A stretch of DNA of 64,000 nt from contig NC_134030.1 in NCBI RefSeq assembly GCF_964204645.1, positions 22,218,210 through 22,282,209 on the forward strand, in the 5' to 3' direction. The number at the start of each line of letters is the position of its first letter. Position 1 is the first letter of the stretch. A model generated the notes under the pieces. That model was not told the DNA's origin. It saw only the letters and a list, made by a program, of their open reading frames with translations, and did no database searches. Below, in pieces: positions 3,749-64,000 of the stretch. A program made the position numbers and the translations under genes. Source of the stretch: Tubulanus polymorphus (Eukaryota; Animalia; Nemertea).

Positions 3749-3755
3749 CACGAAT

Positions 3756-19963: not shown

Positions 19964-20190
<227 letters not shown>

Positions 20191-25851: not shown

Positions 25852-25934
25852 CGTGATATCGAAAGGATTGATTCACATCTAAAAAATAATCGCTCTGATT
25901 GAGGAAGTGATATACATATACAGATACATATACC

Positions 25935-26225
<291 letters not shown>

Positions 26226-26649: not shown

Positions 26650-26790
26650 TTGACTGTCCTACAAGTCAATATTCATAGTCTTACGTGTAAATTACAAGAA
26701 CTGAAATTAATGATCGATAATTTAGCGAAGCAAATTATAGTTCTAGATATCATCATGATCTGTGAAACCTTCATAAATGACAAAAATGCT
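26650..26790 (+). mobile_element. LINE (CR1/L2-type) AP-endonuclease N-terminal fragment
   Basis: [11 protein letters not shown]...LDIIMICETFI matches the EEP/APE start motif (N-I-x-S-L ... D-I-I-x-I-x-E-T). Confidence 0.7.
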
Positions 26791-28410
26791 TTATTATGCC
26801 TTTATTTCATTATCAATACCAGTACATCCATCGTAGTTTGAAAAGTTCATTTTCATTTAGAAAATACCCCCAGTGAAGTTCATTACTTGTTCCTTATTCC
26901 GTTACTTAATGAGAATTCATCTCCCAATAACTTGTTCCTTGTTCCTTATTGGGAGATGAATTCTCAATAATTAACGGAATAAGGAATAAGGAACAAGTAA
27001 TGAACTTCACTGGGTATTGGAAAATTACGTTTTCGACGACACAAAACGTTGTTCCCAAAAGAAGCGGTGAAGTTTCGGAAAACACGTTTTTCTGTTCGGC
27101 GTTTTGTTTTCTGACTCCAACAGACACGGCAAAACAAAACACATCACAAAAGTTTTTCACCAAGAAAAAACGTCTAATTCGTCTGTGGGCTGGCCGCACC
27201 ATCCTGTGCCCACCATCGGACTCTGGACACAGTATCATGTCTAACTGGTATTAATCGATCTTTGCTCTATAAACTGCGGGTCTCTACTAAGAAATCAATC
27301 CATTATTCACCAAAAATAGTTATTGTAATATGTTAACTTACAAAACGTCGCTGAAAAAATCTTTAATTCTGAAATAATACCAACAAAGCTGCAGAATATA
27401 GTTATAGAATATTCTTTTATTTAGTCTTTCACTCGGAGCGTGAAGTAAAAATACCGATCTCTTTACAAATATCGCCTATATTTAAAACGTCGGACCTTAA
27501 CTAAATCCTTGGTTATTTATATATTTCTAAAATGTATTTCTATCGGTAAGGTCATTGTGCTGCTCCTGTGAACATCATATAATTGTAGTGCAAACATTCT
27601 AAAAGGTGTTACGTGTTTGCGACAAGTTGAGAATCAATAATTCAATAATTTATCAGCTTCATCTTCGTCGTTGTGTCGATTGTGATGTTCACGGTGTTGT
27701 TCCAGCACTAGAGGTTTATATTCCTATGACAAATCTATTCACAAACTGTCCTAAAATTACGAATCCTATCTGATCTTTTCAAAACAATCCTTATCTCATA
27801 ACTCCCTTTTCTCTAAAAATCTCACGAGTACTTACAAAAAAGAATCTAGTTATTTGCTATAAATGACTTAAGCTTGTACAAAAAAAATCTAATTAACCTA
27901 CATATTACTATTTGTCTTCGCGCTTACTCATTAAAGTAAAACAATTTTAGAGGTTTAAGACCTATTAAGTTAAGAATCCTGATCAATTCAAAATAATCTT
28001 TATACATAGTTTAGTGCCGATTGCGATGTTATGGGTGTTTTCCCAGCACTAGGTTTATATACCTAATACAATTAAACCTATTTACAAACCATCCTAAAGT
28101 TGAGAATCCTATCTTATCTATTCCTAATTAACTCAATAATCATTACGAGATTTCACCCGAAAGCTCGTTATATTTACAAAAAAACAAAAACAAAAAATAA
28201 AATCTATTTGAATAAAAACCCACACATTACTATTTGTCTTCGCACAATTAAATCTAACAATTTAAAAGGTTAAATCTGTGCAGATTAACATTTTCTGTTT
28301 ACGGTTTGAATACAATTCTTCCAAATCTATTAAGGATTTGTGTCTTTGCCCTTCCCGGCTTTCATATCCATATATGGAGTTGTATATTGCACAGAAGCAT
28401 ACGAATAAAG

Positions 28411-40343: not shown

Positions 40344-43063
40344 CTAAGATAGCAATAAATGTACACTCACTCTTTTTTTGAGTTTGTTAAGTTCTGAGTC
40401 GATGCGGTTTTTCATCATAACTCGGTTGCTGGCTTGGCAACGGAAATACAGGTGAGATAGGTGCGGAAGATTTTCGATTAATTCGACGATTGATTTGACG
40501 AATGGATCGATATCTTCCTGTGTATCAAAGCTCTCTTCGAAAACGTTGAACTCTAACAGACGAAGCAACGAGACGTTTTTAAGAAGTCGTAAGATTTCAC
40601 AATGCTGTTCGGTGCTTTTAAGTGAGCTTGTGATACCGATATTTTTCAGCTGATTTACCGCGTCTGATGATAGATACTGAACAAGTGCTTGGTAATCAGA
40701 CTCTATCTTTACATCTACCGATAAAACAGTCAGCCGCCGCAGGTGAGGCAGAATGCGGCTTTTTTCTAAACTAGATCTGTGACAAGAAAGAAGCTTTAGT
40801 TTCGACATTGAAGCGATGCAATCACTGATTTTTGTCGATTGATCTTTGGTTAGTTGAATCTGATCAAGATGAATTGTTTCGATCTTTGAAGATCTTAAGG
40901 TGCTGTTAAAATCTTCCAAATCTGTATCGGTCATTTCTTCATTGAAAATTCTCCCATAAGGCTTGGATTTCTCTCCGCCTCGAAGATGAATAGCTTTCAA
41001 GTCCGGAATTATCTCTGTCAGCCCGATATGTATAGGTTCATTCGGAGGCACACGGAGATATAGATGCTTTAGGGATGGAGAGAATTTGCGAATATTGCCA
41101 AAAATTTTCCCACTAGCCTCGGTTTTGATGTACAGAATTTCCTCTTTGTATTGTGTGGATGGATCACGAGTGATCGACTGAACGTCATCTTCAGATTCAA
41201 TCAATCGACTCGTTTTTATCCAGTCACAATCGAGTTTCTTGTAACCGATACGGAATTCTCCTTTCAATAGGTCCTCAAACCAGTACATACTGTTGCTCTT
41301 CTGACACAATGCCAAGTACGGATCACTGTCTATTGAACAACACGTCTCCCGTGCGATAATCATACCCTGAAGACGAGTGTTACTCGCTATGGCTGTTTCA
41401 AATGCGCAGTATTCGCCAGTGCCGGATTTCAGTTCGTAACTCATAACTCTTAGATAAACTACCTCGATCGGGCATCGTTTGTGTTCGAGTATTTTTGCTA
41501 GTACATTTATTTGCACGTCGCTAGTTATATTTACAATCAACATTTTTCCGATGTATTGAAATATTTCACTAATGGCGTCGTCCGGACAGTCGGCTTCATT
41601 CAGGTAGATTGACAACTGATCAGATAACCAATAGCTTTCAGATTTGAGTTCGATGTAGCGTTCGTAATCGGGAAGGGCCGCCATCTGGAAACTTTTATCA
41701 TCGTTGATTATATCATCGAAACCTTCCTCATCAATAGTGACTGCTTTTAAATGTTCATCTATTAAAGTCTTGAAAAGTTCACCGAGGCCGCGGTTATACT
41801 TGTAACGATACAGCAGCCCTGCCATGAATCTCGGGTATAATTCACCATATTTCTCAAGTTTGTCCGGTAGTTGTTCAAACGCGCATTTGTCCCAGGGTAT
41901 TTCACCACTGTTGTTGAATTGCACGACCGAGTGTACCGCCGCCAGAAATTCCTGCACAGATTTGTGTATGAACCGTAGCTGGACGGAGCTGTCTGATTTC
42001 CGTCGCGGCGACATCTCTTCGCACGTCAAAGCCGTCCTCTTCGATTCGTCGAGTTTGAGACGATTTTCGCTGAAACTGTTTTGATGCGCGATGAGCGTCT
42101 CATACGCGACTTGACAAATTTCTTCAAGCGCCTCTGAATTTGCGATGTCGCCAAAAAAACATTCCTTCGACAACTTGAAGCCCTCACGTTTACTGATTAG
42201 AAAACATGTCAAATCGATGTAGATATCGGTGAGTTTTGATGGTATCGTAATTTCTTCCTTTTCCATATACAGAAAACAAAACATATGTAGTATCAGCGGG
42301 TTGTAGTAGATACTTTCAAATAAAGGTGGCGCTGCGGTTTTAAGCATGTTGAATAGCTGTTTTGGATCGCGCTTGGGGAATTTTCTCCTCATAATATCGA
42401 TGACTTCTTCCTGTTCGAAGCCGGATATCGATACAACGGTGAATTTGGGATCAGTGACGATCTTGCTGCCCCCGGACTCACGTGTTGTTATGACGATATG
42501 CGCTTTCGGTAATTCTTTGGTCACGTGTACGATGTCTTCCTTCGCTTTATCGTTTTTCAACTCGTCGAAGCTGTCAAGCAAAAATATCGATTTTTCTGCA
42601 TTTTCCTGAACGAATTCTTTAAAACCATCAAACGGCGGCCCGTCTTTTTCGATTACTCGATTCAAAAGATGTTTGTAAATGTACGTATAAATACAAGCGT
42701 TATCAGCGGGCAGTTCATTTAACGGTATATAGAATAACATAGGAAATCTTTTAAGAAACGGTGATCGCTCCCATGACAACACTTGATTAACAATCTGTGT
42801 AGTTTTACCCATACCGGGTTCACCCACGAGGCACACGCGATTCATAGCACGCACGTCATAAGTGAAAAGCTTCTCAAAATCATCGGGTAAAATCACCGAC
42901 TGCTCCTCACTTCCTTGTTTTCGGGGTCGAATTTTTGCGTGTTCTTTGGTAAAAATGTCGTTGAAATTGATAAATTTATCGCTCCACCAAACCTCTTTGT
43001 ACTCTTCAACATCGATCATTCGTTTATAAGTTTCTTCCAGATACCTCCGAACTCGAGTAACAT
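40344..43063 (-). CDS. Terminal exon: NACHT NTPase plus LRR-like C-terminus (NLR-type)
   Basis: Walker A GEPGMGKT, Walker B IFLLDSFDE, sensor 1 IVITTR, NPLILHMFC, winged-helix FIHKSVQEFLAA. C-terminal LxxLxL repeats (LKHLYL, LKAIHL, LKLLSC, LTVLSV, LRLLEF, LSHLYF). Phase-1 acceptor TTTTTACAG| at 43064 with an open frame through to the ORF. Confidence 0.93.
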
Positions 43064-46000
43064 CTGTAAAAACAAAATCAGTTAAGGATTTTTGAAGTTT
43101 AGAGTGATATTAGACATCATGTGTACAAAGTGTAAGATATTGATCAACAGTTGCTATGCTGTTTTTCCCTGGTGATACGCGGGATTTACGCGAAGCAGTA
43201 GAACGCGACCATGGCCACATATTCATTATGTACAGGATATGGAATGAATTTCAATTATTTCAGATGTTAGTGTTTCAATGCACAATATAACTAGATGGTG
43301 TGATATGGCGAAGTAAATAAATGATAATAAAGCTGAGGGCAGTAAAGCTGATGAAGTGTACAGTAGTCAAAAACATATAAAATGGCGTAGTTAGTTACAT
43401 ATAACTATGTGCAGTGAATTGCAGACGAAACATGATGCCTTAATGGCCGTTTACAAAACAGATTATAGCAATCACAATAGATACGCTTTTAATTTGGATG
43501 AACAGTCAACAGTCGACAAGGATTCGCGCCTAGGATTTCGTCCAACCGACTGTGACGGGTACATTTTAAATGAGGGAGAATTGTAAAATAAAGTTGAGAT
43601 AGAACCTTAATCAAAATTCTGTCCATTTCTAAATTTGTTTCGACGTCCTATTTTACTAATTTGTAGTCGTTGTTTTGTAAGAACAATGAGGGGTGGCAGG
43701 TTGTCGTAATAATAAACCAAAAATAAACCTTACTGTCCGTGCCAGTCAAAAGCTATCCAGTGGCGGTTTTAGGATACATCACATGCCTCGCGCGAGGCAC
43801 TCGAAAATCCGAAATTCCCTTCTTGGACCAAGGCAGAAGAAATTCGAAATGGATTTGAAAAGTTTTCAAATGTCAGGCAAAATATCCCGAGTGTTTCGAA
43901 TATTCAATCGCAGGTTATTCGGAGTATTTTATGCCGTAGTGCGTTCGCATAAAAAACCTGCTCAAATAAACCGAATTCTTGAATAAAACTCAAACAAATC
44001 CTCTTTCGTAAAATTCTCAAAAATATGAAACCCACGGCTTTCAACTTTGCGTAACATTCAGAAAAATAGATTACGAAATAATTTTTTCAGTTTTCAATTT
44101 GCCCATTAGTAGTAAAATAACAGGCTATTGAAATTGCGTGTGAGTGCGCTAAAAATAGCTTTTAGCGTAGTGTATCAAGCATAGGAATGATTATCGATCG
44201 GCCAGACCGTTGACATGAGCTACAAATTTTCAATTGATTTCGGTTACAAAATGTCCTCTGGGGGAGTGTATGTATGTGTCCTATGACAGTGCTAATACTT
44301 AACAAATACCAAGACGATAAGTTAAAATCACTTGAAATCTTCTTCCAAAACCGCTTAAGATAAAATTATCAATGATAATAACCTAGAAGATTGACTGATC
44401 AAAAAACCCGTCTGATATGCTAGAGAACCCTTCCCAAAGAATACCCATGATCAATTTCAGCCGTTTTGATTCTGATCGGGCCAGATTTTGAGCCACAGAT
44501 GTTAAACAAAATATTAGTTTGCTCAAACACGAAGACCGTTTTAAAATCCATGGCTCGACGAAAAAATTCAAACTTCATTTTCCATCCTCATTTTCATATC
44601 ATTTATCAAAAAATGTTGATCATGCGTTTAACTGTTCAGTAGAGATAACAGATTAGAATCATAAATACCGGATTAACCTAATCAGGATAAGTTAAATCCG
44701 GGTTTTGACATTTCATTCTGTTACGACTCTTTATCAATTTGTATCTAACAGAATACGATTTTAAATCTGGATTTCTCATAAACCGGATAAATTTCACCGG
44801 TTCCCCCAGTAATCCGGATTAAACCAGTTTAATCATACTTAAAACCACAATTCAACCTTACGAAAATGAAACTTAATTTCATTGAATTGAAACCGGTAAA
44901 AAAATTAATCTTAATTTCATCTCAATCTCGTGGATTAACTTCCCAAACTGTTTAATCTTGATCTTGGATTAAATCAGAAAGTGACGACTGTATAATTTAC
45001 TTACTCGACTCCTCTACCAGGAAACCGAGCTTTTTTAATTCGCCTGAAAAATGAAATGAAATTCATTAATTAGGAATATCATGATAACACTAAATCAACT
45101 TCAAACTTCAACTAGGGGTCCAGGTACACCATGCCCACCTGCGAAGTGGTTTCAAAGCATCCACAATCAATATTCAATATTCAATGCCCCCTGCCGACCA
45201 TACACAAAAACCAATGACATTGAAACTCACCACAATCATAGAACATGTCAGCAGCTTCGATTTTGTAATTGATCGTGATAACAAAATATGCCTGGGTACC
45301 AATATAGGCCTAATAAGGAAATACTAAGTTATTCTACTATTCAACACCCCCTGATAACCATATGTAAAAACTAATGACCTTGAAACTCACCACAATCATA
45401 GAACATGTCATGCGCTACAACTTTGCAATTGATTATGGTAACAAAATATGCCTAGGTACCAATATAATATGGAAAAACATTTTTTTTACCTACGAATGAG
45501 TACTGATGACACCAATATGGCCGCCAATCGTCATAATTGCCTCATCAAATATACCTGTCTCGGGTATAAAACATACCTTTCCAAAGAATACCCATCACAA
45601 ATTGCAATGAGAAATGGCAAACCAGTAGGAAGCTACAGGACTACATTGACATTTTTGGGCACTAAAAAGGTCATAGGACGGCAATCTTGAGTCTGATCGA
45701 CCAGATTTTTCTCATGCTGATGAACCCTTGGGGAATTCAAATATATACGAAAGATCAAGGTTATTGATGAAAGCGTCTTCAAAATTTCCCTCGAAAACTT
45801 CAAACATGTGTAAAAAGTGCTGATTTTGGCGAACAACAATGGCTGCCAGTCGGCCATCTTGATTCTGACAGGGCCAGTATTTAGTGTGAAGATGTGTCTA
45901 GGGTAGATAGATGTGTAACCCAAATATCAAGACATTACCTTGAAGCTTCTTCAAAACCTCCCAAAATAACTGGATTCCGTCTACGGACGGACGACGGACG

Positions 46001-49000
46001 AAAAGTGAACGCAATAGCCCGCTGAAGTCCCAAGTGGGCTAACAAGTAAAGCTTCTACAGACATCATTGATTGTTCCTACAAGTGTTGCATGTATACTGC
46101 TTGTATACAAGGCAAAATGCCCAATCCCTCGAAGAGAGGTACTCATGAGATGTACCAATGAGATGTGCTCATGAGATGTACTCATGATATTTACTCATGA
46201 GAGGTACCCGTACTCACTAGCGCTATGACTCCTCACTATTTCAATGCAATCACCCAAACATTTGTCAACTGAAATGAAAACAAATAGATAAGTAAATAAT
46301 TTAAGTTGATACGAACTGTGACCAAAGAGTGACGACTTAAAACACTCATTAGTTTAACTCTTAAAATCTGTGTCCACGTGTATTATGTGCAAGGTGCAAT
46401 ACAATTACATACATATGTTGATCTAGGTGTACATTTATATGTCATGATTGATGAATATAATCTTCAATGAATTCAACGCCACAGTTTTCTTAATCTGAAA
46501 AATGAGTTGTTATTGTATTGATATTCACCTGTTTCTGTCAGTTCAGTTGTATTTGTTTCACTGTCAATTTCATCTCCTATTCAAACAGAACAAACAATTA
46601 TTATTCAAAACCTGAAAATCAGATCATTTAATAAAACGTTCAGTGAAACAAAAATTCACTATTTACCGAAACATTCTTGGACTTGTTTCCAATAACCTGT
46701 GTTTGTCTTTAAAGTTTTACTGGTAAATTTACTGAGTTCAGACACTATATGTAATAAACAATAGACAAGTTTTTATACAATAGAATTCTATTATAAATCA
46801 CAAACTGATTTCACTGTGGGTTAGCGGTAAAAATCCCCTTGGTAAAAATTCCCTCCTTTTGAATGCAGTCTAAGTAGATGCAATCATATTTCATATAATT
46901 GATACATAGATCGAATTTATTCATATTTTATTGTGAAACACCATTAGGATATCGTGAGCATACAAACTATTGTATATACTATTTGAATTAAAACATAAAA
47001 CGAATAAACGGTTCATTAATACTAAATTGGTACCGTACTTAAAGTTATCGCAGTTAATGAAAGGGTTCATCGCACATTTCAAACATATTACACTAGCTTG
47101 AATCTAAAATATTCCAAATTAAAAAGTTCATTTTTTCTAATAATTCATGGCATCGCGCTGCTCAAATATACCACAAGTTACCAAAAGTTCACAGTTAAAG
47201 AAAAATTTCCAGTTCGATTTTTACCTAGGGGATTTGTGAACTTACTCGCGCGAGATATATCATATTCCCACTGTTTTGATGACGAACTGCTGCGAGCCTC
47301 TTTACATTTCTCTTTTAAAATAGTCTCTAGTGAATCTGTAATTATACAATGTTTCGATGTTCGAGGAGCAAAGAAAACTTAGATCCATTGTCGACACCAT
47401 TGTTACATAGGGTACAAATAGGTTCCTCTCTAACTGTATTATCCCATCTCCCAGTTTCCACCGGAAACTTGTGGTTGCATGTTCTGAATATTATATGGTT
47501 GTCTGGTATATTAGATATTAAGTATGGTTTAGTACTAAATCCTGCTTGAATGAACTGTAGTACGAGCCTTTGGAAGAGATAGAACATAATCAACTCCTCC
47601 ATCTCAGCAAAAAATGATCTCTTAATCTCTGGCGAAGAGATACTTTTGGGAATTGGGAATAATTGGCTTAGTATTGAACCAATAGTATATAAAATGTTTT
47701 TGATATTTACAAATTTGCAATTGTTTTTGATACTTCTTTTTTTGTGTAGGCCATAAAGAGCTTGATAGATTGCCCCTGATCTCCACCCTTACTCAGTACC
47801 AGTCGACCTTCACCCTTACTCAGTACCAGTCGACCTTCACCCTTACTCAGTACCAGTCGACCTTCACCCTTACTCAGTACCAGTCGACCTTCACCCTTAC
47901 TCAGTACCAGTCGACCTTCACCCTAACTCCCGGTACTGATTTAATTTGTTAATTAAAACACCTAACAGTCAACAGTATTCACCTTTAAATCCCGGGATTC
48001 TGTTTGCAATAATTTGTTTGATATGAAACACTGAAAAAGAATAAACACAATAGATTACTGCAGGGTCAGAGAAACATGTTCTATGTCTTTTTAATAGCTT
48101 GTTCTACGGGGTAAACCTATTAAAATATCATTTCGGAGGAAATAAGAATTTAAATAAAAATTCCCTTAGTAAGATTAAAATCAGGATGAGGGAACTGTCG
48201 ATAGGGCAATATATGTTCAAACAAACGATTCTTGGAAAGTTCGAATTATTCACACTGTGATCAAAAAAGAACCTCGCGTATTTCAAATTTCATCATTCGG
48301 TGGAGGTGAACAAATTCTTTTTGCTCGTTTTTTCACTGAATTCGTCCCACAATTATTTTAATTTGACTTTTCTTCGGAGGCCATAAACCAAGCTTCAAAA
48401 AAGGCCCAAACCAGAGAATAGATATTGAATGTTTATAAAAGGCTCGCAGTATTGAAGATCAGTGAGGAATATCTGTTACTCTGACATTTCAAGCAGAAAA
48501 CTTCTATCCATCTTCAGAGATCTATATTCAGCTTCGAAGCCACTACTTTTGATTTCGAGTCACCACGAAGACAGTAATATTCCCCCAAAACTGTAAAACA
48601 AGCTGCAATTCAACCTGCAGGCTATTTGCATGAACTTAGGAAGCATTTCAGTTTTAAGCGTTCTGAACAGCTATGCTGGACTTAATAGAGCTGTGTAAGA
48701 ACCACTATGTGACGTCACATCTTAAATAGTTGAGACTACTTTCAGTCTTGAATATCATGAAGAGAAAAACCCACAATATAGATCTAAAACACCAGCTCTT
48801 GTTTTTTCTTAACGCTGTTTCATCTGGTTGTGTCCTATTAATATCCCTTCAGTAGAGGTTCCTGGTGTGACACTCCCTACTTTAAACCATACTTCAAATA
48901 AACTCTTAAGATGGGCGGAAGAATTCCACCCAAAACATTAACACTAAAAAACAAGAGCGCTTATTTTAGATCTGTATTGTGGGTTTTCTCTTCACGACAT

Positions 49001-52000
49001 ATCATATCATTCATTGATTAATTAGATAAGTCTTTAACATGTAAGTTGTTATCAGTACTTACTCGCTATTTCATCTTTAGCTGAAACACAGAAAACAACA
49101 ATGACTTACGAATAAACATTAAGTAGATCTAAACAGTTACATTCATACAGTTCACTTAAACAGTATGTAATTAATTCTACATAATTCTTTGTTATTTTGG
49201 TCTCAATTAAAAGTGTAATCAGAATTGATTTATTTGTAATATCATTGCACTTTAAACTTCAACCTTGAATTTTACTCACTACTATAGACTACAATTCCTC
49301 GTTTCTTTAATTCCACTGAAATCACAAATAGAAATTGAATATGAATTCAGCAATAAATCAATCCGCGATGAAAAGTGAAACAATACTTATCAGCTTCAAA
49401 ACGTTTTACATGGACATTTGACACGAAAATGCGACATGTGACATGTGAATAAATTACGAACATGTCGATGAAGATGTTTTATCTAACTAAATTGAGCATT
49501 TGACCCTACATGAAACGTGTAACCATGTATAATTTGGGAATATGTGTTTGTTATATGTTTGTGCACATGTGCATGTTACATATAATATATATGAGCATTT
49601 TGTATGTATATACGTTTTTACATGCATGTATAATTTGATATATAAAATTGATATTTACTTTCATTCATATCAGTGATATATTTAAACGCCTGACAAACTG
49701 AACTGTGAATTATTCTGTTCAATTCCTCCTCATTTTTTCTCTCTTCATTTTCCTCTTGTTTCAGTTTCTCTTCGAGTTCTTTCAGAAATCTTTCAGCTCG
49801 TCCAGCGTACAATTCTAAAAGTGATTCACCGTGAAAACAATGAGAAATTGAGATCCACAAAACCTTGAGATTGAAAAATGATGGAATAAACCCTGCTGAT
49901 TCTGATGCAATCCTTACATAGACCTCGTACCTTTGGTAGATTCAATAACTGCGATTTTCAATTTAATTTCTGAAAAAAAGAATATAATTCATGACTACAA
50001 CACAGCATCCACTACTGGTGACATCAACACATCTATTTTAATCTATCCAAATATTTGAAAGAAGTTCTGTTCCTGTTTCTGGTTTATCAGAAAATCATGT
50101 AAAATCATAATGACTATAAAATATCGTTTAAAGTGCATCGTTAATTGCTAGCCATTTGTTTTTAAGCGTCTGCTTTCGACCCTTGACCTCAATAGTCATA
50201 GTTTATTACTATGAGTTTCTTACCTAAAACATTTCGGCTTATTTTATAAATACCTGAAAAAACAGTTGAACAACTAGATTAACACATCAGAAACTGATTT
50301 CCAAAAATGCCACATTCTGACAGAAATCCACCCCATTAGGCTCCGAGCCCCCTGGGCCATCTTTTAATGATGTTTATTTACCGGGTATTATCAGAGCCAC
50401 TACATTGGAATCCAATATGCATGAACCAAAACATAAGTTTTTTCACGCTGTTATTAATTTTCAGAAAAAGATACAGCAGCTTTCTTGGATGCAGCAATTT
50501 AGATATTTTTGGAACCACCCACTAGAGAAAGGGACGGCTCCTAATACGTACTACGATTGATTTTGAACAGACAGTGGAACCAATGATATTGCGTGGCTTT
50601 CTCGTTTAAACGCGACTGATTTTTAATAGATGAACTCGGTCTGAAGAATATTCACATCGATACAAATTGTGATCTAGCAATATTCTTAGTTTCCGCATCG
50701 ATTGCCACCGTGCAATAACCTATACTTAATAAGTGGCTCTGAATCAAAACAGATGCCTTTAACAATCTGATGACATGATCATCAAATAAGTCAGCTCAAA
50801 GCACAAAGATTGTTTACACTTACTTTTATCTAGTTCTGTAGAATTGTTCTCTTCTAATATCTGCAAACTTGACTCCGATAAAACTGATTCTACAAATAAA
50901 TACATGAGTAAAATAATGCAATAGCCCGATGCGACTAAGTCTCAAGTTCAGGGAAACCGCGCCACTTTGGGAAGAGAGTTGAAATGCACAACAATCAGAA
51001 AATCTTAATATTCAACGCCCCCTGGCGATCATATAAAGAGATGAATGACCTAGAAACTCACCACACATTTCCATAGATCGCGTTATGAGCTACAATTTTG
51101 AAATTGACTGGTATAAGTTTTGAAATTGACTGGTATAAGCCTTTCATTTCTTTTACTTCTATTTGATTTTACGGCAGAGTCGACATACAATTATGTCCCG
51201 AGAAAAAATGTCATTTTGCTTATAATTCATTGCATCGCACAGCTCAAATACAAGTAAACAAGAGTTCACAGTTAAAAGATAAAGCTAACAAGAGTTTACA
51301 GTTCCGAATTTTAAGACATTACTAATAAAAAGTTCAATTATTATTATTAATTCTAACAATTTAAGAGTTTACTTAAGAATTTATCCCAACGAAAGATTTC
51401 ATTGCACAGTTCAAACATATTTCAGTCTCATTGCTTTGAAATGTTTTTGAAAATCACCAAGTGTAAATAAGAATATCAGGTCCAATGTTAATAAATTCTT
51501 GGCTTACTTCTCCTCATATTTCCTTCTGGCATCTTTACCTCTGGCATTTTTACCTATGGTGGAATTTTTCCTCTGGCATTTTTACTACTGGTATTAAAAC
51601 CTATGGCATTTCTACCTCTGGCATTATTATCGCGTACCACAAAAAACCAATGACCTCGAAACTCAAACACAATTATACAACGAGCTTCGACGATTGATTG
51701 TAGTTACAAACTACGCGTAGGTGCCAATTGGCAAATTGTATATTATTCAATATTTAACTCCCCCTGGTGGCAAAAACAAAACATTGACTGATTCCAAATT
51801 CCATGTAAGGAGATGAATGCCAATAATAATCAAATATAAGCACATCATTAATAAAACTTAAAACCGGTTGTTGTTTTCCTGAAAAAAAAAGTTTTCCATT
51901 TAGAAATGAGTACTGATGACGCTGAGGTTGATATTGACCAGATCAGTCAAAACAGGAATTTCATATTGCATTCGTCATGAAGTGGATTAATTTAATTGTT

Positions 52001-55000: not shown

Positions 55001-58000
55001 CACTACTCTTACCACTCACAACTCATACCACTCACTACTCTTACCTCTCACTACTCTTACCACTCACTGCTCTTACCACTCACTACTCATACCACTCACA
55101 ACTCATACCACTCACTACTCTTACCACTCACTCCTCTTACCACTCACTCCTATTACCTCTCACTACTCTTACCACTCACTACTCTTACCACTCACTACTC
55201 CTACCATTCACTACTCTTACCTCTCACTACTCTTACCACTCACTACTCTTACCAGTCACTACTCTTACCACTCACTACTCTTACCAGTCACTCCTCTTAC
55301 CAGTCACTCCTCTTACCACTCACTCCTATTACCTCTCACTACTCTTACCACTCACTACTCTTACCACTCACTACTCTTACCACTCACTACTCTTACCACT
55401 CACTACTCTTACCTCTCACTACTCTTACCACTCACTCCTATTACCACTCACTACTCTTAACACTCACAACTCATACCACTCACTTCTCTTACCACTCACT
55501 TCTCTTACCACTCACTACTCTTACCACTCACTACTCTTACCACTCACTACTCTTACCAGTCACTACTCTTACCAGTCACTACTCTTACCACTCACTACTC
55601 TTACCACTCACTACTCTTACCACTCACTACTCCTACCACTCACTACTCTTACATCTCACTCCTCTTACCACTCACTACTCTAACCACTTACTACTCTTAC
55701 CACTCACTACTCATACCACTCACTACTCTTACCTCTCACTACTCTTACCACTCACTACTCTTACCACTCACTACTCTTACCTTGTTTATCCTTATCTCTC
55801 GTTATCTCCCAATCATTCTCAGTTTCGTAAACATCGCCGATTATTCTAACAATTTCTATAAAACAAAAGTCTATTATATTATTTACTGTTCAAATGTTTC
55901 AAAGACCCGAAAGTTTAAACAGATCAAAGTAACAGACAACACAAATATTGCTACAGATATTTGAACAAGCTCCAATGTTGTTAAGTGGTTATCTTGGGGA
56001 ACAGAACTCTAGTCAGCCATCTTGATTCTGATTGCATCTAGCATGAATTCAAGGGTTTATGACTACGGTTGTGATAATGAAGCAATATCTGTTGCATATA
56101 ATTCAGGGCCCGGTTTTATAGACTGGTATTAACTTAAACCCGGGGTTACCTCAATTCATTTTCAATTCTGTTAACCCCTGGGTTAAAGATAATACCATGA
56201 GTCTGTAAAACCGGGCCCTGGTGTTTAGTGAATGAGTTTTGAAACTATGAACTGTATTCATGTAAGATATTCTACATGTTATAGAAATAAAGGGTTAATA
56301 ATTCTATAAATACCTGGCTGCAGTTGGTCACGTGTTTTCATCCAATTCTCATGATCTACAAAGAGAAAACAACACCTAAACATTATCAAACCGATATCTG
56401 AGAATATGTGCAGTAAATCATGTGAGAGAATCTTACCTTTTTCATACCAGGTTTCACTTGTCCAACGCAACAATTCATTCACGTCTTCAGGTTTCGGACC
56501 CAAACGCGGTACTGTTAATTAGAAAATAGAAATACTGTTTATTTACACGATGCACGTTCACCTGACAAATCAACCCAATAAAGAAACAGTGTTATTTGGA
56601 TAATGTTGGAGCCACCCACTAGAGATAGGCAATGGACCTAATGCTATGATACTGCAATACTTTCTTGGCGCAACAGATTTTATACATGTATCTACCCTGT
56701 ACATCATGATAGTAGTGCAGTATCCACAGGGTCCAGTTCCACAGTTCCGAATTAAGATTTAACTCTGATTTAACTAATTGAAAATGAACTAACTTTAACT
56801 CAGAGTCAACTCTAACTCACATCTGTGGAACTGGGACTTGGTCTTTCCAGACGAACTCGGTCTATATTCACGTCTATACAAACTGTGACCTAGGAGTGAC
56901 GACTTCCGAACACTCTTAGTTTGGACACTTAAACATGAGCAAAATATGCATGACTATAAAGCTGTCGATGACTACACAGTTTTTATGACTAGGGACACCA
57001 CGCCCACTTGGGAAGTGCTTTAAAATGCTCAAAAATCTGACCATTTCAATATTCAACGCCCTCTGGTGAACATGTAATGAAACCAATGCCCTTGAAACAC
57101 ACCACAATCATAGAACTGGGCCTTTGAAAGATACACATATATAGACCAAGATAATTGATCAAAGCGTCTTCAAAATGTCCCTGAAAACTTCAAAATGTGT
57201 AAAAAGTGCTGATTTTGGCGAACAACAACGGGTGCCAGTCGGCCATCTTGATTCAGATCGGGCCAATGTTTGGGCTGAAGATGTATTAGGTTAGATGCAA
57301 GCCAAATATCAAGAAAACTTCCCAAAATAACTGGATTCCGGACGGACCACGGAGGATGAAAATTGAATGCGATATATATATTGTTCTCTTTTTCCATTGG
57401 AATTTTCTGGAGTTTCAAAATCTATAACATTTTTTTAATGTTTTCCAAATTTTTCATGTCGTATGAAATTGGCTGATCAAAAATACCTGTCTCAGCTATA
57501 GATGATCCCTTTCCATAGAATAGCCACCACAAATCAGATCTTTATTTACAAAGAAATTATAACAAGTTATACAAAAACCCAAAGGGACCCAAAAATAACC
57601 CAAAAATAAAGAAATTAAAGGGTCTTCAAAACTTCCCAAAATACTGGATTCCGTCTACGGACTGACGGACGGACCAACGGAAGGACGACGGACGAAAAGT
57701 GAACGCAATAGCTCGCTGGTCCCAAGTGGGCTAAAAAGGCAAAAAAAAGATTAATGTTTAAAATTTGTTAATTAACGGTTTTAGTTCTGTGGCCTATCTA
57801 ACAGCTTAAGACCAGTCTAAGTTCATTTTGGTTTCTATAACCGATCTAACAATTTAAGACCAGTCTCAACTCATTTTGGTTTCTATAACCAATCTAACGA
57901 TTTAAGACCAGTCTAAGAGTTTACGACCACTTTTTGAATAAGACTCTGCAACTAGGGTCCCGAAATTTAACATTTTGACTGATAATCGAGAATCAACTGC

Positions 58001-61000
58001 GTACCACCTTGGGACCCTTGACTCCCTATAGCCTTGTAAACTATTTTTTCATTTTAAGCATTATGTATAATGAATTATTACAGGACTTACAATTTCCACA
58101 TCTACACAGTTGATCATCAGGTTTTCTGCACCGCACTGTCAATTAGAAATATTAGTATTTTATTTCAACAGTTTGTCTGTTATTGTTTTTCAGATTAAAT
58201 GATGGTTTTATGTAAAACTTACAGCAGTCATGACGCCACAGTATAAACAGTATTATCAGAATCAGTAATATCAGTAATATACCGATCACAGCACCAGCCA
58301 CACTGCCTCCACCATGATCTAAAACTAATCGATTTATTATATATCAATCAGCAATTGATTTCACAGCGTTGATATTATTTATCTATTTAGGACTAGCCTC
58401 AAATAATTGTTTCATAACCAAAATCAACCGTGATATACATCGGTGGTTTAGGATTTTTAGAGTATGTTGGTTGATTTTGACTTCAGGGACAAAATTCTAT
58501 CAGTCTGTACTCAGTATTCAGATAAAATCCGGTGATTTCTGACCAACGTGGAATCTTACCTGGTTCATCAGTTGGACCGGCGTTATGATAACCAGCGACA
58601 TCAATGACCCTTTCATTAATACCGTCAGCCAAACACCGCCCTCTATAGTCAGTTGTGGTACTATTTACGATAGGAATCGTTATATTCCACTGATAGTTTG
58701 ATAGTTTTTGAACGACAGCTGGAGGGTCACATGTAACTTGTTGAGTCAATGGGTTACTATTAACTGTTACATTATACGCCGCGTGTGTTTCATTTTCACT
58801 GGATTTCTTGTAAACTGGTGCAAAATCTGTTTGAAAAATACAAAAGGTGAAGGTTGAATCTGACAAATATCTGGCCTAGCGGAGTTCTGAACCCCTGTCA
58901 CAGGAGCCATGCTCCCTTGGCAGGGATTCGAACTTGATGGCAAATATAATACGGCGCAGCAATATTATCTATTAACGTTCGTAGGAACAACAGTTATGTT
59001 TTTTGCATAAATCGCGTAAAGTAGCAGGGAATTCTTTTTTAACTGTTATTCTTAGGTTGATTGCTTAAATTCGACAGATAAATCTGTTACTTACAATGAA
59101 CAACGATTGGATTAAATTGTCGAGGTTCTGGAAACGTAAGGTTCTCCTTTACAGCACATCGAAATGACGTTCCATTGTGCAGTTTGAAATCAGCTTTGAA
59201 CTTGTAGGTCGTGTCAAAACCTTTTAAATGCCCTTTGCGAGGTACTTTACGAGGTTGTGGATCAGGAATTGGCTGCCATTGTTCAGAACCTCTTCTCTTC
59301 TGCTGGTATATCACTGTAGGATCGGGCCTCCCGCCTTCTGTTCTACAAATATATTTTACAACTTCTCCTTCAGTTCTAATGTCAGGTTGTCCGGTGAGAT
59401 TACCTTGTGTTTGAATTTCATCGGGAAAATCTGAAAAGATAAAGATGTAAATGTATTTTTGGATGATATCATATTTTGGACGATCAAATTCATGAATAAC
59501 GGGATAAATACACTGTAGCTCAGCTCTCATGCGCGCCACGTTATTTGCTTGTTAGGCACCGTAAGATATGGCAGGGGAATTCATATGTGGACACCCGTTT
59601 GAATGTTAAAACTCAAACAAGAATTCAGACTGATATCGTATGGAAATTCTCCGATGACAATACTATACAACTTACACGTAACATCCATTTTAGTTTGATG
59701 TAGTATTTGATTTTGAAGTGGTCTCGGTAATATTAAACCATTGTATCTCCTCAACTGACATTGAATCAATGTTGCGTAAATCATGTATCTATAATCCATC
59801 TGATTCCTGTTGATAACTCCATCTTTCACCGCAGTATTTACACCTTGCTCATGGATATTTACAATATCCGTTGAACCTTCAGTAAATCCATCAGCATACC
59901 ATTTTACTTTGATGTTTTGATTACCGATCTTACTAGTGGCTTCACAAGTACAAGACAGTGATTGGAATTGAGCCACCTTACACGGGTTTTCATTTATCCC
60001 TATACCTACAACAAATTTAGATGGAAACATTTACAATTTACCAGATTCCGTGGAACTGGAAAACTAGGGGCCCAGGGACACCAAGCCCACTTGGAAGTGG
60101 TTTCAAATGCTCAACAATCTAACAATTTCAATATTCAAAATATGGTAACAAAATATGTCGAGCGACCAATATAATAAGGAAATACTAAGTTATTCTACTT
60201 TTCAACGCCCCTGGTGACCATATAGAATAACTAATGACCTTGAAACTCACCACAATCATTGAACATGTCATGAGCTACAACTTTTCAAACTACGAATGAG
60301 TACTTACGACACCAAGATGGCCGCCAATTGCGTCATAATTTGCTGATGAAAAATACCTGTCTCAGGTATAAAAGACCCCTTTCCAAAGAATACCCATCAC
60401 AAATTGCAATGAAAAATGGCAAACCATCAGGAAGTTACAGGACTGAGAATCAAGGTTAAAATTGACATTTTTGGGCACAAAAAAGGTCACAGGACGGCCA
60501 ACTCGAGTCCGAGTGACCCAATTTTTCTCATGCTGATAGACCCTTAGAGGATACAACTATATCTGAAAGATCAAGGTAATTGATAAGCGTCTTCAAAATT
60601 TCCTTCGAAAACTTCAAAGATGTGTAAAAAGTGCTTCTTGGGCTGAAGATGTGTCTAGGGTAGATACATGCATAAATGAAATATCAAGAAATTACCTTGA
60701 AGCGTCTTCAAAACTTCCAAAAATAACTGGATTCCGTCTACGGACGAAGGTCCGTACGAACGGACGGACGGACGGACGACGGATGAAAAGTGAACGCAAT
60801 AGTCTAAAGTCCCAAGTGGGCTAAAAAGGAGATTAGATCTTAGACGATTTGTTTGTTTTTCAAAAGGACTCAAAACCTAGAGGTCGATAGAGTGTATAGT
60901 CGAAATTGATTGGCACAAATGCTTATATGATTCTATCAAAATGAAGATTTCAATAGTTCTATTGTTGAATACATGAAACTCAGAAACACTTGAAACTAAA

Positions 61001-63909
61001 CACTTAAAAGAAACGGATTTTAATCATCGTGGTTTCTTCAAGCTATCGATTGTTTTTGAGCGGACATTTGAACTGATGATACAGCTCAACTTTCATGGAT
61101 ATTCTTGGAGCCACCCACTAGCCAAAAGGGACGGTGATAATTTAACTGATGATACAGTGTAACTTTCTCGCGTTTAAACGCTGATGATTTTAATCATTTA
61201 CGATGAACTCAGTCTGAAGAATATTCACATATTCAGAAACTGTGACAAAAAGAGTGACGACTTTCAAACATTCTTAGTTTCACCCTTAAAAAAACGTTGC
61301 AGAATCTGCATCCAGTTCTGGAATTGGTTGTTTCCACAGTGATATCCGTCCAAGAGTACCTTGTAGTAACACCAGACACCGAGGTTCTTGGTGAATCCAA
61401 ATCAAAACAGATGTCCCTGAAGTATTTGAAAGCACGGACTTCTAGATCTCAGAAAGAACTGACCATACTCACTAATAACATCTGATATGTAGATTTGACT
61501 TTCTTTCGTTCCTGCTGAATTAGTGGCCACACATTTATACTGTTTACCAGGCTCCAGTTTGAAAACCCACACTGTCGATATACCGAGTGGTAATGGTGTC
61601 CAGGCCCCTCCTGCTCCACTGTTCACGTGCAGCTGGAAGTGTACATCAGTCGTTGTAGAGCTGCTCTGTTTACAGGTAATACTAACAGTTTTACCTTCCT
61701 GCGACAGTAATATATTTGTGCCCGGTAATACATTCACACTGTTCAGTACAACTGCATCAGGTGCTGAAATATCAAATACACAATATACGTAATATTCTTG
61801 TACCCGGTAATACATTCACACTGTTCAGTACAACTCCATCAGGTGCTGAAATATCAAATACACAATATACGTAATATTCTTGTACCCGGTAATACATTCA
61901 CACTGTCCAGTACAACTCCATCAGGTGCTGAAATATCAAATACACAATATACGTAATATTCTTGTACCCGGTAATACATTCACACTGTCTTGTACAACTC
62001 CATCAGGTGCTGAAATATTAAATATACAATATACGTAATATTCTTGTACCCGGTAATACATTCACACTGTCCAGTACAACTCCACCAGGTGCTGAAATAT
62101 CAAATACACAATATACGTAATATTCTTGTACCCGGTAATACATTCACACTGTCCAGTACAACTCCACCAGGTGCTGAAATATCAAATACACAATATACGT
62201 AATATTCTTGTACCCGGTAATACATTCACACTGTCCAGTACAACTCCACCAGGTGCTGAAATATCAAATACACAATATACATAATATTCTTGTACCCGGT
62301 ATAAATAAAAAGGTGTTCAAATAGGTACGGGGCCAATTCAAGAGGAGGTTTGGGGTGCACACCCCTGATAATGGCAAGATTTTACTTGAAAATGTAAAAT
62401 ATCAAAATGACACCTTAAGAAATTTAAATTCATAAGCTTATTATCTGTATATCTAAAAACTGGTTAGTGTTTTCCGGTAAGCTTTTTTCCCTATCAATTA
62501 TATACGTATATGATATGCCCTTTTTGGGGGAGGGTGAATCCGTCCCTGAATCAAACCCCATGGTATAATCATTTTCTAGAAGGTTGGATTTGACAAAGCA
62601 AATAAATACATGCATAAATATTCATTGCGAGTTTCTGATGTGATCAAATATCATAACGAAAGAATTTGAAAACATTTATAAGACACGACGTTACGAAATA
62701 GTTATATTAACATGATCACACGTTGTGATAAAACTAGTTATCCAAGTAACTCCCAAATCTCTAAATGTTAACAATATAATTGCATATGTTCAAATTACAT
62801 TAGATACTGGACGAAAGATCGGTTTAAAGAATGTTAACTGCATTTCACTCTGATATCGAATGGAAATTCACTCATGAAAATATTATACAACTTACATGTA
62901 ACATCCATTCTAGTTTGATGTAGTATTTGATTTTGAAGTGGTCTCGGTAATATTAAACCATTATATCTCCACAAACTACATTGTATCGATTTTGCGTAAA
63001 TCATGAATTTAAACTGCATATGATTCCTGTTGATAACTCCATCTTTCACCGGGGTATTTACGCCTTGATCATGCATCATGTCGAAATCCGTTGAACCATT
63101 AGTAAATCCATCAGAATACCATTTTACCGCCATGTTTTGATTACCGATCTTACTAGTGGCTTCACAAGTACAAGTCAGTGATTGGAATTCAGCCACCTTA
63201 CACGGGTTTTCATTTATCTTTATACCTATAATGATATGATAGGGTATGGTATGTCATGGTATGTCATGGTACACAACAGTAAAGCACAGATAAGTTTTCC
63301 TTTTTCCCCCTCAGCATTATTTGATAAATCTTAAATCAGATGCACCAAAAGGGTTGACCAATTTATTTCTAGAGTGAATAAGTGTGGGGCCAGATTTTAG
63401 CTAACCAATTGAGTTTTTATAGAGAGCAGAACAATGACCAGTATGTCATGTATTGATCTATATGAAGGGTACTGGTATAGAAACTGTCAGCCAATCCAGT
63501 AATTTATTTCAACATATTTTCTGTTCGCAATTAGTAGGTTCAGTGTTGCATTTTGTAGAAACAAACAGATTGTCACATGACCAACTGATTTATAGAGGAC
63601 AATGGAGTTCCCGCCAATACTCACTGATTACATCTGATTTGTAGATTTGACTTTCTTTCGTTCCAGCAGAATTAGTGGCTACGCATTTATACTCTTTTCC
63701 AGCCTCCAGTTTAAAAACCCAAGCTGGTGCTGATGTTGTAGGTATTAGAGTCCAGGTCCCTCCACTTTTCACTTGTAGCTCAAAGTGTACACCAGTCGCT
63801 GTAGAGCTGCTCTGTTTACAGGTAATACTAACAGTTTTACCTTCCTGTGACAGTAATACACGTGTACCCGGTAATACATTCACACTGTTCAGTACAACTG
63901 CATCAGGTG
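40344..63909 (-). CDS. Candidate Ig-ectodomain transmembrane NLR (Ig x>=6, TM, micro-exon linker, NACHT, LRR-like); 5' end beyond window; ~2000 aa in window
   Basis: Exons 63909-63625, 63225-62896, 61763-61473, 60005-59676, 59430-59095, 58826-58560, 58318-58223 (TM), 58135-58091, 56511-56437, 56355-56314, 55855-55781, 54508-54461, 54166-54137, 54056-54006, [53419-53384 weak acceptor], 53216-53133, 52901-52854, 52766-52728, 52541-52524, 52439-52392, 52317-52264, 52156-52109, 50889-50824, 50253-50224, 49969-49931, 49814-49659, 49315-49280, 49080-49063, 48030-47983, 46744-46667, 46576-46529, 46268-46218, 45043-45005, 43063-40344. Every internal exon is a multiple of 3, phase 1-1 and stop-free. 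Confidence 0.75.
45110..46043 (-). mobile_element. HINE/DINE-1-like (Helentron-associated) interspersed repeat
   Basis: Subterminal inverted repeat GCCCAC(C/T)TG / CAAGTGGGC, (GTCC)n microsatellite and short hairpin near the 5' end. Homologous to 56988-57735 and 60062-60826. Confidence 0.6.
47385..47545 (-). mobile_element. LINE ORF2 C-terminal fragment
   Basis: FRTCNHKFPVETGRWDNTVREEPICTLCN resembles the Cys-containing C-terminus of non-LTR ORF2. Confidence 0.65.
47783..47925. repeat. 27-bp minisatellite
   Basis: CACCCTTACTCAGTACCAGTCGACCTT, about 5 copies. Confidence 0.95.
48753..49001. mobile_element. MITE with ~60-bp TIRs
   Basis: TCATGAAGAGAAAAACCCACAATATAGATCTAAAA / TTTTAGATCTGTATTGTGGGTTTTCTCTTCACGA. 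Confidence 0.65.
54705..55780. repeat. 16-bp minisatellite abutting a splice donor
   Basis: CACTCACTACTCTTAC, about 65 copies. On the minus strand it reads GTAAGAGTAGTGAGTG and starts exactly at the donor of exon 55855-55781. Confidence 0.95.
56104..56220. mobile_element. Small Harbinger-like MITE
   Basis: CAGGGCCCGGTTTTATAGACT / AGTCTGTAAAACCGGGCCCTG inverted repeats. Confidence 0.65.
56988..57735 (-). mobile_element. HINE-like repeat, rearranged copy
   Basis: Same termini and GGACG microsatellite as 45110-46043. Confidence 0.55.
58223..58318 (-). CDS. Transmembrane exon of the Ig-TM-NLR model
   Basis: DHGGGSVAGAVIGILLILLILIILFILWRHDC, followed by the basic/Cys exon LRCRKPDDQLCRCGN (58135-58091). 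Confidence 0.88.
58560..63909 (-). CDS. Six Ig-like domain exons (A1-B1-A2-B2-C-D)
   Basis: One domain per phase 1-1 exon (267-336 nt) with paired Cys. Motifs VSITC...YKCVATNSAG, CTCEATS...VKW...IQC and YICRTEGGRPDP...FRCAV (C2-set-like). Confidence 0.88.
60062..60826 (-). mobile_element. HINE-like repeat
   Basis: Colinear with 45110-46043. Confidence 0.6.
61721..62300. repeat. 82-bp tandem repeat built from an intron-exon boundary (second array starts ~63867 and runs off the window)
   Basis: CCCGGT recurs at 61721, 61803, 61885, 61967, 62049, 62131, 62213 and 62295. Each unit contains the acceptor and the first 42 nt of Ig exon A. Confidence 0.95.
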
Positions 63910-64000
63910 CTGAAATATCAAATACACAATATACGTAATATTCTTGTACCCGGTAATACATTCACACTGTTCAGTACAACTGCATCAGGTGCTGAAATAT

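Follow-up and report, generated by a model that had tools for sequence, protein, structure and literature searches.

NLRs are, in their canonical form, cytosolic sensors, and recognition at the cell surface is normally carried out by separate receptors. The locus described here, which lies in a 64,000-nucleotide stretch of Tubulanus polymorphus (Nemertea) DNA (the window), raises the question of whether both can be joined in one polypeptide. A first-pass annotation had proposed that a multi-Ig ectodomain, a transmembrane (TM) helix and a NACHT-LRR unit belong to a single gene. We conclude that the segment from 63909 to 40344 (minus strand) probably represents exons 5 to 39 of one such gene, encoding a receptor with the order Ig-TM-L-H-NACHT-LRR (L and H being the two parts of a cytoplasmic module), with the mechanism and origin proposed below.

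The proposed chain matches isoform X2 of LOC141906708 (XP_074652115.1, here P0151; 2393 aa), which agrees residue for residue with the DNA of the window and of the 7 kb that follow it. RefSeq thus already contains this gene model. It consists of 39 coding exons, all GT-AG (AG...GT bounds) and all internal ones phase 1-1, which gave an uninterrupted frame of 7.2 kb when joined and checked against P0151; the joining was done by script only to test identity with P0151, and protein searches used P0151 or single exons. Exons 5 to 39 lie inside the window, while three additional Ig exons preceding 63909 and the signal-peptide exon (71001-70905 in window-equivalent coordinates) are found 3 to 7 kb past its end. 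The NACHT-LRR unit stands at the C-terminus in all three RefSeq isoforms. The phase 1-1, GT-AG, stop-free chain of the first-pass annotation is confirmed by this model, but not its count: there are 35 exons in the window, not 33, and two micro-exons of 18 nt each (52541-52524 and 49080-49063) may be the missing pair. The TM exon, previously placed at 58318-58223, spans 58324-58223 in the RefSeq model. The three long introns of the earlier chain (58091>56511, 52109>50889 and 45005>43063) are all present in that model, and the NACHT-LRR reading frame indeed opens at a phase-1 acceptor rather than in a first exon (ttttgtttttacag followed by AT at 43063).

Run X1 has contigs from which the last intron (43064..45004, minus strand, GT...AG) has been spliced; this public run, whose kind is not on record, is taken as RNA from its exon and intron depths and its spliced joints. 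Depth was 356-720 over the NACHT exon, with 0 differences, and 0-11 in the flanking intron; a joint at 43063/45005 skipped 1941 nucleotides (CT..AC) with a depth of 286, compared to 7.7 for the unspliced contig. This joint is specific to the locus, as its flanks differ from those of a paralogue on C19 at 10 of 69 nt, and the proposed junction 45005>43063 is thus borne out by these contigs. In runs X1 and X2, spliced contigs at exons 35/36 differ by G>T at 46679 and were not counted for this locus; neither was a loose end at 45045 in the read contigs, which belongs to a P0155-like paralogue. For transcript-assembly fragments across the type D Ig exon, the TM exon and L, a protein-fragment search returned only RefSeq models. 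Comparative evidence supports the predicted joining of the TM exon with L-H in one transcript: for every L and H exon, homologues occur in a conserved order at 10 or more further loci of the genome, where the L exons stand behind TM exons. This conserved order of the linker and helical exons, along with the splicing of the last intron in run X1, places the chain beyond chance.

The part of the ectodomain that lies in the window is encoded by six Ig-like exons in the order A, B, A, B, C, D, all on the minus strand and mapped exactly: exon 5 (type A, 63625..63909), exon 6 (type B, 62896..63225), exon 7 (a second window copy of type A, 61473..61763), exon 8 (a second copy of type B, 59676..60005), exon 9 (type C, 59095..59430) and the membrane-proximal exon 10 (type D with N-glycosylation sequons, 58560..58826). 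An 82-bp tandem repeat at 61707-62301 lies ahead of exon 7. The earlier designation of all six as Ig-like stands firmly for type A, for which Pfam gave Ig_2 at 36.2 bits (cut-off 27) and I-set at 27.9 bits (cut-off 23.7) within residues 1-1000 of P0151, although exon 5 searched alone matched ig/I-set weakly. Type C is borderline (C2-set_2 at 18-19.6 bits, cut-off 21). Types B and D had no Pfam match and nothing meaningful in PDB profile searches, and they are assigned as Ig-like from their Cys/Trp spacing (Cys...Trp...Cys in exon 6). The type D exon is conserved at 74-99% identity across about 25 loci of the genome. In its entirety, the ectodomain comprises 9-11 Ig-like domains from alternatively used phase-1 cassette exons.

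Exon 11 (58223..58324, minus strand) encodes, by hydropathy, a single TM helix (SVAGAVIGILLILLILIILFILW) followed by RHDC, and exon 12 (58091..58135, minus strand) encodes a Cys-rich juxtamembrane segment (LRCRKPDDQLCRCGN) that is kept in the paralogues P0002, P0004 and P0152. Only two segments of P0151 are hydrophobic, residues 6-24 (signal) and 972-995 (TM; Kyte-Doolittle maximum 3.48), and the latter is followed by WRHDCLRCRK, a positive-inside flank. As two such segments with positive charges past the TM fit a type I topology, the product is predicted to be a type I membrane protein rather than a soluble cytosolic one, in agreement with the topology first proposed.

Exon 39 (40344..43063, minus strand) is a 2.7-kb reading frame of 905 codons plus stop that encodes, according to Pfam and Foldseek, NACHT, helical domains and LRRs. 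The NACHT NTPase core (42372..42839, minus strand) was recognized as PF05729 (E 8e-17, 62 bits, cut-off 26.7; residues 61-216 of the ORF counted from its ATG), and both Walker A (GEPGMGKT) and Walker B (IFLLDSFDE) are intact. A PDB profile search with NACHT-LRR gave only a weak match, to the NACHT of NLRP2 (E 3e-4). The AlphaFold2 model of the exon aligned over its full length to NLRC4 in Foldseek (E 8e-12), although its NACHT part was modelled with low confidence (pLDDT below 50). The LRRs (40347..41219, minus strand) occupy model residues of about 615-905, possibly from about 470, with a pLDDT of 65-93 and alternating strands and helices. While no Pfam LRR family matched significantly, VIA structural alignment placed the region close to the LRRs of NLRP3 (Z 17.1, rmsd 3.2, 262 aligned), NOD2 (Z 17.0) and NLRC4 (Z 18.4). 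In this model, a true RI-type LRR of about 10 predicted repeats forms the C-terminus, and the earlier claim that the LRR is kept alongside NACHT is upheld.

Between the TM helix and NACHT lie the nine micro-exons of the L part (exons 13-21, 30-84 nt each, 52854..56511) and the 17 exons of the H part (exons 22-38, 18-156 nt each, 45005..52766), all phase 1-1, on the minus strand and mapped exactly. A 1-kb repeat of a 16-mer is present at 54711-55781, within the intron past exon 15. L-H is about 475 aa long, charged and predicted to be all-helical; AlphaFold2 with a 6-sequence alignment gave helices only and no usable fold (pLDDT 39.9). No Pfam family was found at E<=0.1 in residues 996-1490 of P0151 or in the N-terminus of P0001, a paralogous protein, and an ESM Atlas feature search yielded no usable match. 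Consistent with the first-pass annotation, Pfam found no death-fold, BIR or other known effector domain between the TM and NACHT. Its description of this stretch as a long linker has to be given up: rather than a spacer, L-H is a conserved helical cytoplasmic module common to at least 12 Ig-TM paralogues. The order TM-Cys-L-H is conserved at these loci with no adjoining NACHT match, and the RefSeq proteins with TM-Cys-L-H there terminate without NACHT. Judged from this comparison, L-H is the apparent native tail of an Ig-TM receptor family in which a NACHT match was not found.

The genome contains about 25 loci for Ig-TM and at least 20 for NACHT-LRR. Their parts are mixed by way of phase-1 exons, with three kinds of N-terminus: short-tailed Ig-TM, Ig-TM followed by the helical module, and one without Ig or TM. 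In P0002, P0004 and P0152, Ig-TM is joined directly to the same phase-1 NACHT-LRR exon, and in P0003, P0005 and P0006 this exon follows N-termini without Ig and TM. By locus, LOC141906709, LOC141906641 and LOC141906642 have the order Ig-TM-short tail-NACHT-LRR, and LOC141906884, LOC141906974 and LOC141907029 have Ig-TM-L-H without NACHT. These paralogues have the Ig A/B/C/D, TM and Cys exons in common with LOC141906708, and differ from it with identities of 64-68% in the NACHT exon and about 76% in L-H. Among the RefSeq proteins retrieved, that of LOC141906708 is the sole one with both L-H and NACHT-LRR behind Ig-TM. A third locus (C9:306593-323010, known from six-frame search coordinates only) has type D, TM, L-H and NACHT in one orientation. 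Three Ig-TM-Tyr-tail genes at 13-31 kb of the window were considered as close paralogues and rejected, as blastn of 43-64 kb against 1-40 kb of the window detected no DNA similarity. The one-gene architecture (signal peptide, multiple Ig, TM, NACHT-LRR) is in accord with the RefSeq model, the intact frame, the joint 45005>43063 and the same order of exons elsewhere.

How does this architecture compare with known receptors? NLRC4, NLRP3 and NOD2 share with it a NACHT with Walker A/B, helical domains and a C-terminal RI-type LRR; however, they are cytosolic with death-fold N-termini in place of an Ig ectodomain, TM helix and helical module, and the vertebrate proteins are only 13-15% identical to it in sequence. 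Toll-like and IL-1 receptors (ectodomain-TM-TIR) are type I receptors with their own oligomerising signalling domain, and LOC141906708 would follow the same logic with a STAND NTPase plus LRR instead of TIR. The membrane-anchored anthozoan NLRs and the Ig-containing sea cucumber NLR that the first-pass annotation mentioned were both found in the literature (PMC5094078, PMC8699970). The anthozoan proteins are predicted to be membrane-bound through 3-5 N-terminal transmembrane helices (PMC5094078); as with LOC141906708, this would place a NACHT protein in the membrane, but by multi-pass bundles and without the Ig ectodomain and type I topology. Closest is AjNLRC4 of Apostichopus japonicus, which experiments report to be a membrane receptor binding microbes through its Ig part, and in which, as its authors argue, recognition has passed from LRR to Ig (PMC8699970; see also AjNLR-new, PMC13133943). 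In both AjNLRC4 and LOC141906708, a single chain carries Ig domains outside the cell, an anchor in the membrane and NACHT in the cytoplasm, and neither has a CARD, PYD or death domain. They differ in that AjNLRC4, which lacks an LRR, has two Ig domains and two predicted TM segments, whereas the LOC141906708 product starts with a signal peptide, has 9-11 Ig-like domains and a single TM, and adds the 475-aa helical module along with a full LRR. As the best NACHT matches outside Tubulanus are only about 28% identical, the nemertean Ig-TM-NACHT fusion was likely assembled independently of AjNLRC4. The Ig-TM-NACHT design is rare, but it is already known from sea cucumbers.

We infer that Ig recognition is coupled to NTPase activation in this protein. 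The product would reside in the plasma membrane, where binding of a multivalent ligand by the Ig ectodomain would cluster receptors; this would bring the cytoplasmic NACHT domains to nucleotide-dependent oligomerisation beneath the membrane, and the LRR would serve as the kind of autoinhibitory lid found in NLRC4 and NLRP3. Because a death-fold is absent, the output would pass through the L-H helical module or through proteins recruited by it. As to origin, exon shuffling would have joined one 2.7-kb NACHT-LRR exon of phase 1 to receptors built entirely of phase 1-1 exons. The most specific version of this proposal, namely that L-H is a new membrane-proximal signalling or effector domain, that a STAND NTPase-LRR cassette was shuffled onto surface receptors and that Ig binding drives NACHT oligomerisation, is offered tentatively and may well not hold in full.

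A somewhat unlikely but serious alternative is that, within an unchanged architecture, the logic runs in reverse: NACHT-LRR, tethered at the membrane, would sense a cue from the cytosol or endosomes, Ig and L-H would serve adhesion, self/non-self recognition or localisation, and the NTPase would not be triggered by Ig. This would be consistent with an LRR that is retained and well folded, unlike the situation in AjNLRC4 (PMC8699970), with the use of the same NACHT-LRR exon without Ig/TM in P0003, P0005 and P0006, and with the 12 or more paralogous loci at which Ig-TM-L-H has no adjoining NACHT match. No result obtained here counts directly against it. However, at least 4 or 5 independent Ig-TM plus NACHT combinations have been kept in the genome, which suggests selection on the pairing itself, and AjNLRC4 is reported to act from the outside in (PMC8699970).

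It is considerably less probable that the locus yields two products, an Ig-TM(-L) receptor without NACHT and a cytosolic H-NACHT-LRR protein from an internal promoter, with the full fusion being rare or an annotation join. Candidate internal starts would be, for example, M1095 or the Met of "KMS" in exon 21. RefSeq divides the C19 paralogue in exactly this manner, into P0168 (TM-L1-L3) and P0001 (H-NACHT-LRR), and P0001 starts at an internal Met homologous to that of "KMS", so that LOC141906708, too, could conceivably yield a shorter, cytosolic protein by starting internally. In addition, read-through of the exon 37 donor meets a stop after 7 codons, making NACHT-less forms possible, and the junctions from 58091>56511 through 52854>52766 rest on comparison and the gene model. 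On the other hand, L4-L9 were not found at the C19 locus, and the split there may reflect decay, whereas all 39 exons of LOC141906708 are intact and in frame, L1-L9 always stand behind TM exons in the paralogues, and each of the three RefSeq isoforms is a full fusion. Moreover, an ATG-bearing first exon is neither needed nor seen ahead of exon 22, and the ATG of exon 22 is out of frame.

That the gene is a decaying or non-functional chimera arising from tandem duplication in a fast-evolving cluster is highly improbable, for although the cluster is very dynamic, nearby NACHT copies are broken and contain stops (e.g., C6:22305140-22306120), the C19 copy is split and introns are full of repeats, the 7.2-kb frame is unbroken, the Walker motifs are conserved, run X1 shows the NACHT exon expressed with correct splicing, and paralogue comparison shows exons conserved while introns diverge.

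The favored reading, a single gene for a surface receptor carrying its own NACHT-LRR, bears on several points. The presence of NACHT-LRR genes in T. polymorphus contradicts a 2024 survey that counted Nemertea among the groups without NLRs (PMC11508797). The mixing of Ig-TM and NACHT units in this genome constitutes a natural experiment in modular receptor evolution, rather than a lone oddity, and the paralogue pairs with and without the NACHT-LRR cassette make it directly testable what a STAND module does when a surface receptor acquires it. If the proposed mechanism is true, this protein would be a transmembrane NLR, a surface-triggered "inflammasome/resistosome" with its LRR kept, and one polypeptide having both surface recognition and an NLR would link two arms of innate recognition.

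The NACHT domain (Pfam PF05729, E 8e-17) lies in a 921-codon open frame on the minus strand (43109-40347) of the window (C6:22218210-22282209), which belongs to a 268-Mb assembly. This frame starts at a strong acceptor, ttttgtttttacag followed by AT, at position 43063; the acceptor is in phase 1 because a codon is completed by the two bases after the AG, just as the first-pass annotation had it. Upstream of it are six open frames of exon size that have Ig-like features, plus one exon for a very hydrophobic helix. When a paralogue's NACHT-LRR was used as query, we recovered XP_074652115.1 ("uncharacterized protein LOC141906708 isoform X2", 2393 aa; referred to as P0151), which matches the window and the next 7 kb residue for residue. 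The LOC141906708 sequence is publicly available from RefSeq, where it stands as an uncharacterised prediction, and this entry, rather than a self-joined exon model, was the spliced protein analysed throughout.

All 39 coding exons of P0151 are bordered by AG and GT, and its internal exons are all of length divisible by three and in phase 1-1. Exons 5-39 occupy 63909-40344, exactly the span first proposed for the gene, and the three long introns proposed with it (58091>56511, 52109>50889 and 45005>43063) are all in the model. The GT-AG borders and phase 1-1 of the proposed exon chain also hold; its number does not, as the model has 35 exons in the window instead of 33, and two 18-nt micro-exons may explain the discrepancy. 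The TM exon (exon 11, 58324-58223) is real, its acceptor lying 6 nt upstream of the position first given. The gene start is outside the window, with a signal-peptide exon at window-equivalent 71001-70905 followed by three further Ig exons. In isoform X1 (2601 aa), none of the eleven Ig-type exons is left out, and they run A-B-C-A-B-A-B-A-B-C-D; one A-B pair is missing from X2 and the first A-B-C from X3. NACHT-LRR is the C-terminal end in all three.

Directly before every type-A Ig exon, there is an 82-bp tandem repeat of 7-12 copies, 97% alike (window 61707-62301 and 63936-64000; L013:1694-2655 and 6370-6839; C6:21831236-21831793), and the repeat is kept at paralogous loci. The unit copies the intron-exon border, with 25 bases of intron up to and including the acceptor and the 57 bases that open the exon, and its final bases are GT; any one copy is therefore a potential 57-nt phase-1-1 mini-exon. 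The repeat may provide alternative acceptors or serve as a substrate for recombination.

In P0151, just two stretches are hydrophobic, residues 6-24 and residues 972-995, and the second is followed by WRHDCLRCRK. This predicts a type I topology in which 11 N-glycosylation sequons are on the outer side. The Ig-like character first assigned to six exons is borne out unevenly: the ectodomain is above Pfam thresholds for Ig_2 and I-set via its A domains, the C domain is borderline C2-set, and B and D are Ig-like by Cys/Trp pattern only. In the NACHT, both Walker motifs are intact (A, GEPGMGKT; B, IFLLDSFDE). LRRs were not detected in a Pfam search of P0151; when the 905-aa product of exon 39 was modelled with AlphaFold2, its C-terminal part formed a strand-helix solenoid with good confidence (pLDDT 65-93). 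By VIA-align, this LRR superimposes on that of NLRP3 with Z 17.1 (rmsd 3.2, 262 aligned), with Z 17.0 for NOD2, 18.4 for NLRC4 and 16.6 for ribonuclease inhibitor, and the whole model aligns in Foldseek to NLRC4, NLRPs, NAIP and NOD2 (E 8e-12 to 1e-8). Confidence is low for the NACHT region of the model, as no more than six paralogues went into the alignment.

The NACHT exon is present in six public T. polymorphus sequencing runs. The analysis of contigs from these runs covered window 42600-48500, where the upstream module meets the NACHT exon; for the TM-to-tail junctions (58223 to 52766), whose stretch includes a 1-kb 16-mer repeat, the support is comparative. In run X1, NACHT-exon contigs equal the window sequence at depth 356-720, and the intron beside the exon is at depth 0-11, a pattern from which we infer that this run, whose kind is not on record, is RNA; in runs X3 and X4, the even coverage of introns suggests DNA. 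An X1 contig at depth 286 contains the predicted junction, 45005 joined to 43063 across a gap of 1941 bases bounded by CT..AC (GT..AG in the direction of the gene), and an unspliced contig crosses the same intron at depth 7.7. The 69 bases around the joint have 10 differences from the closest paralogue (contig C19), and the spliced contig therefore comes from the window locus. Other spliced contigs, at exons 35/36, were not counted, as they show either a fixed difference or ends specific to a paralogue.

Within the intron between exons 37 and 38, an interspersed repeat (44964-46145) has a summed contig depth of 4,000-350,000 in runs X1, X3 and X4, versus tens elsewhere; related pieces are found at 57.4-57.8 kb and 60.4-60.9 kb. 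The intron following exon 15 (55855-55781) opens with 67 copies, 90% alike, of a 16-bp repeat, CTCACTACTCTTACCA (54711-55781), with strong GC skew. Elsewhere on the minus strand of the window are three tandem copies (13500-31500, ~6.5 kb each) of another Ig-like-TM gene with a Tyr-rich acidic tail, with no similarity at the DNA level to the gene at 43-64 kb, and a 347-codon open frame (8554-9594; partial second copy at 3330-3770) with several hydrophobic segments and DRAVAV and NAFIF motifs, which by eye resembles a rhodopsin-type GPCR.

The 475 residues between TM and NACHT, initially described as a long linker, are encoded by exons 13-21 (L, 56511-52854) and 22-38 (H, 52766-45005). The closest NACHT paralogue, P0001 on contig C19 (81% identical), has a 307-aa helical N-terminus, all exons of which are present, in order, at window 52.8-45.0 kb. 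A genome search with both the H part and the TM-to-H stretch found them together, in the same order, at ~20 loci, including a tandem array of ~37-kb units (C6:21.69-22.12 Mb). The one array unit examined contains Ig A, B, C and D, TM, the Cys exon, L1 to L9 and H exons, with no NACHT between it and the next unit. RefSeq proteins from paralogous L-H loci (P0153-P0155, 1038-1144 aa) read signal peptide-Ig x4-TM-Cys-L-H, and their cytoplasmic part is ~76% identical to that of the window gene. As L-H is shared with NACHT-less Ig-TM receptors, it is the native cytoplasmic module of a receptor family and not a spacer. It is 20% acidic and 16% basic, with little Pro or Gly, and predicted all-helical, the fold not being confident (pLDDT 40); a Pfam search of L-H gave no family and an Atlas search no look-alike.

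The NACHT-LRR exon (43063-40344) is a mobile cassette. This single-exon unit has at least 20 genome copies, 59-81% identical, nearly all of which align from the first or second residue past the acceptor. Four kinds of N-terminus precede it in RefSeq: Ig-TM-Cys with a short tail (P0002, P0004, and P0152 from the neighbour gene LOC141906709); Ig-TM-Cys-L-H (LOC141906708); L-H alone (P0001, C19); and short N-termini without Ig or TM (P0003, P0005, P0006, loci on C8 and C12), these three proteins having VQMG-type motifs with a repeated "NPGIN…VQMGGNNTMN". Exons for IgD, TM, L, H and NACHT also share one orientation at a third locus, C9:306593-323010. A decayed NACHT exon, in fragments with several stops (G000:C6:22305140-22306120), adjoins the intact LOC141906709 ~23 kb past the window end.

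In the 55-kb C19 region (C19:27777-82780; L002, L015, L025), an Ig-C remnant is kept along with TM, L1-L3, H exons and NACHT-LRR; no L4-L9 exons were detected at this locus. RefSeq divides it into LOC141914493 (P0168, 133 aa, Ig remnant-TM-L1-L3) and LOC141914492 (P0001, 1217 aa), the latter starting at a Met whose counterpart in the window is in the "KMS" of exon 21, and this two-gene annotation is the main support for a rival that we keep alive, namely that the window gene also starts internally. However, exon 22 of the window gene is internal and in phase 1, the ATG within it is not in the reading frame, and the window frame is uninterrupted from the TM exon onward. The observation of one continuous exon chain is confirmed, and its reading as a single cell-surface NLR, with the linker recast as a conserved module, is supported.

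Its function we infer. In NLRC4 and NLRP3, the LRR keeps the NACHT closed and ADP-bound, and activation leads to nucleotide exchange and oligomerisation. By analogy, the LRR of the window gene would lock in this closed state a NACHT tethered beneath the membrane, behind the multi-Ig ectodomain. In the simplest, outside-in model, multivalent ligands would cluster the ectodomains and NACHT oligomers would nucleate, with output via the L-H module or its partners. Alternatively, the retained LRR may sense a cytosolic cue, the Ig part having other roles. For outside-in signalling, the relevant precedent is AjNLRC4 of the sea cucumber (Ig-TM-NACHT), by experiment a membrane receptor whose Ig part binds microbes and which oligomerises, leading to phagocytosis (PMC8699970).

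Both precedents named in the first-pass annotation are in the literature: anthozoan membrane NLRs, with 3-5 N-terminal TM helices (PMC5094078), and sea cucumber Ig-TM-NACHT proteins (PMC8699970, PMC13133943). Unlike AjNLRC4, which has no LRR, the window gene has an LRR, one TM plus a signal peptide, 9-11 Ig-like domains and the L-H module, and is therefore a distinct variant of the same known type. Our literature search found no paper on Ig-TM-NACHT genes in nemerteans, and a 2024 survey reported NLRs to be absent from Nemertea (PMC11508797); in contrast, the T. polymorphus genome has at least 20 NACHT-LRR loci in one subfamily alone.
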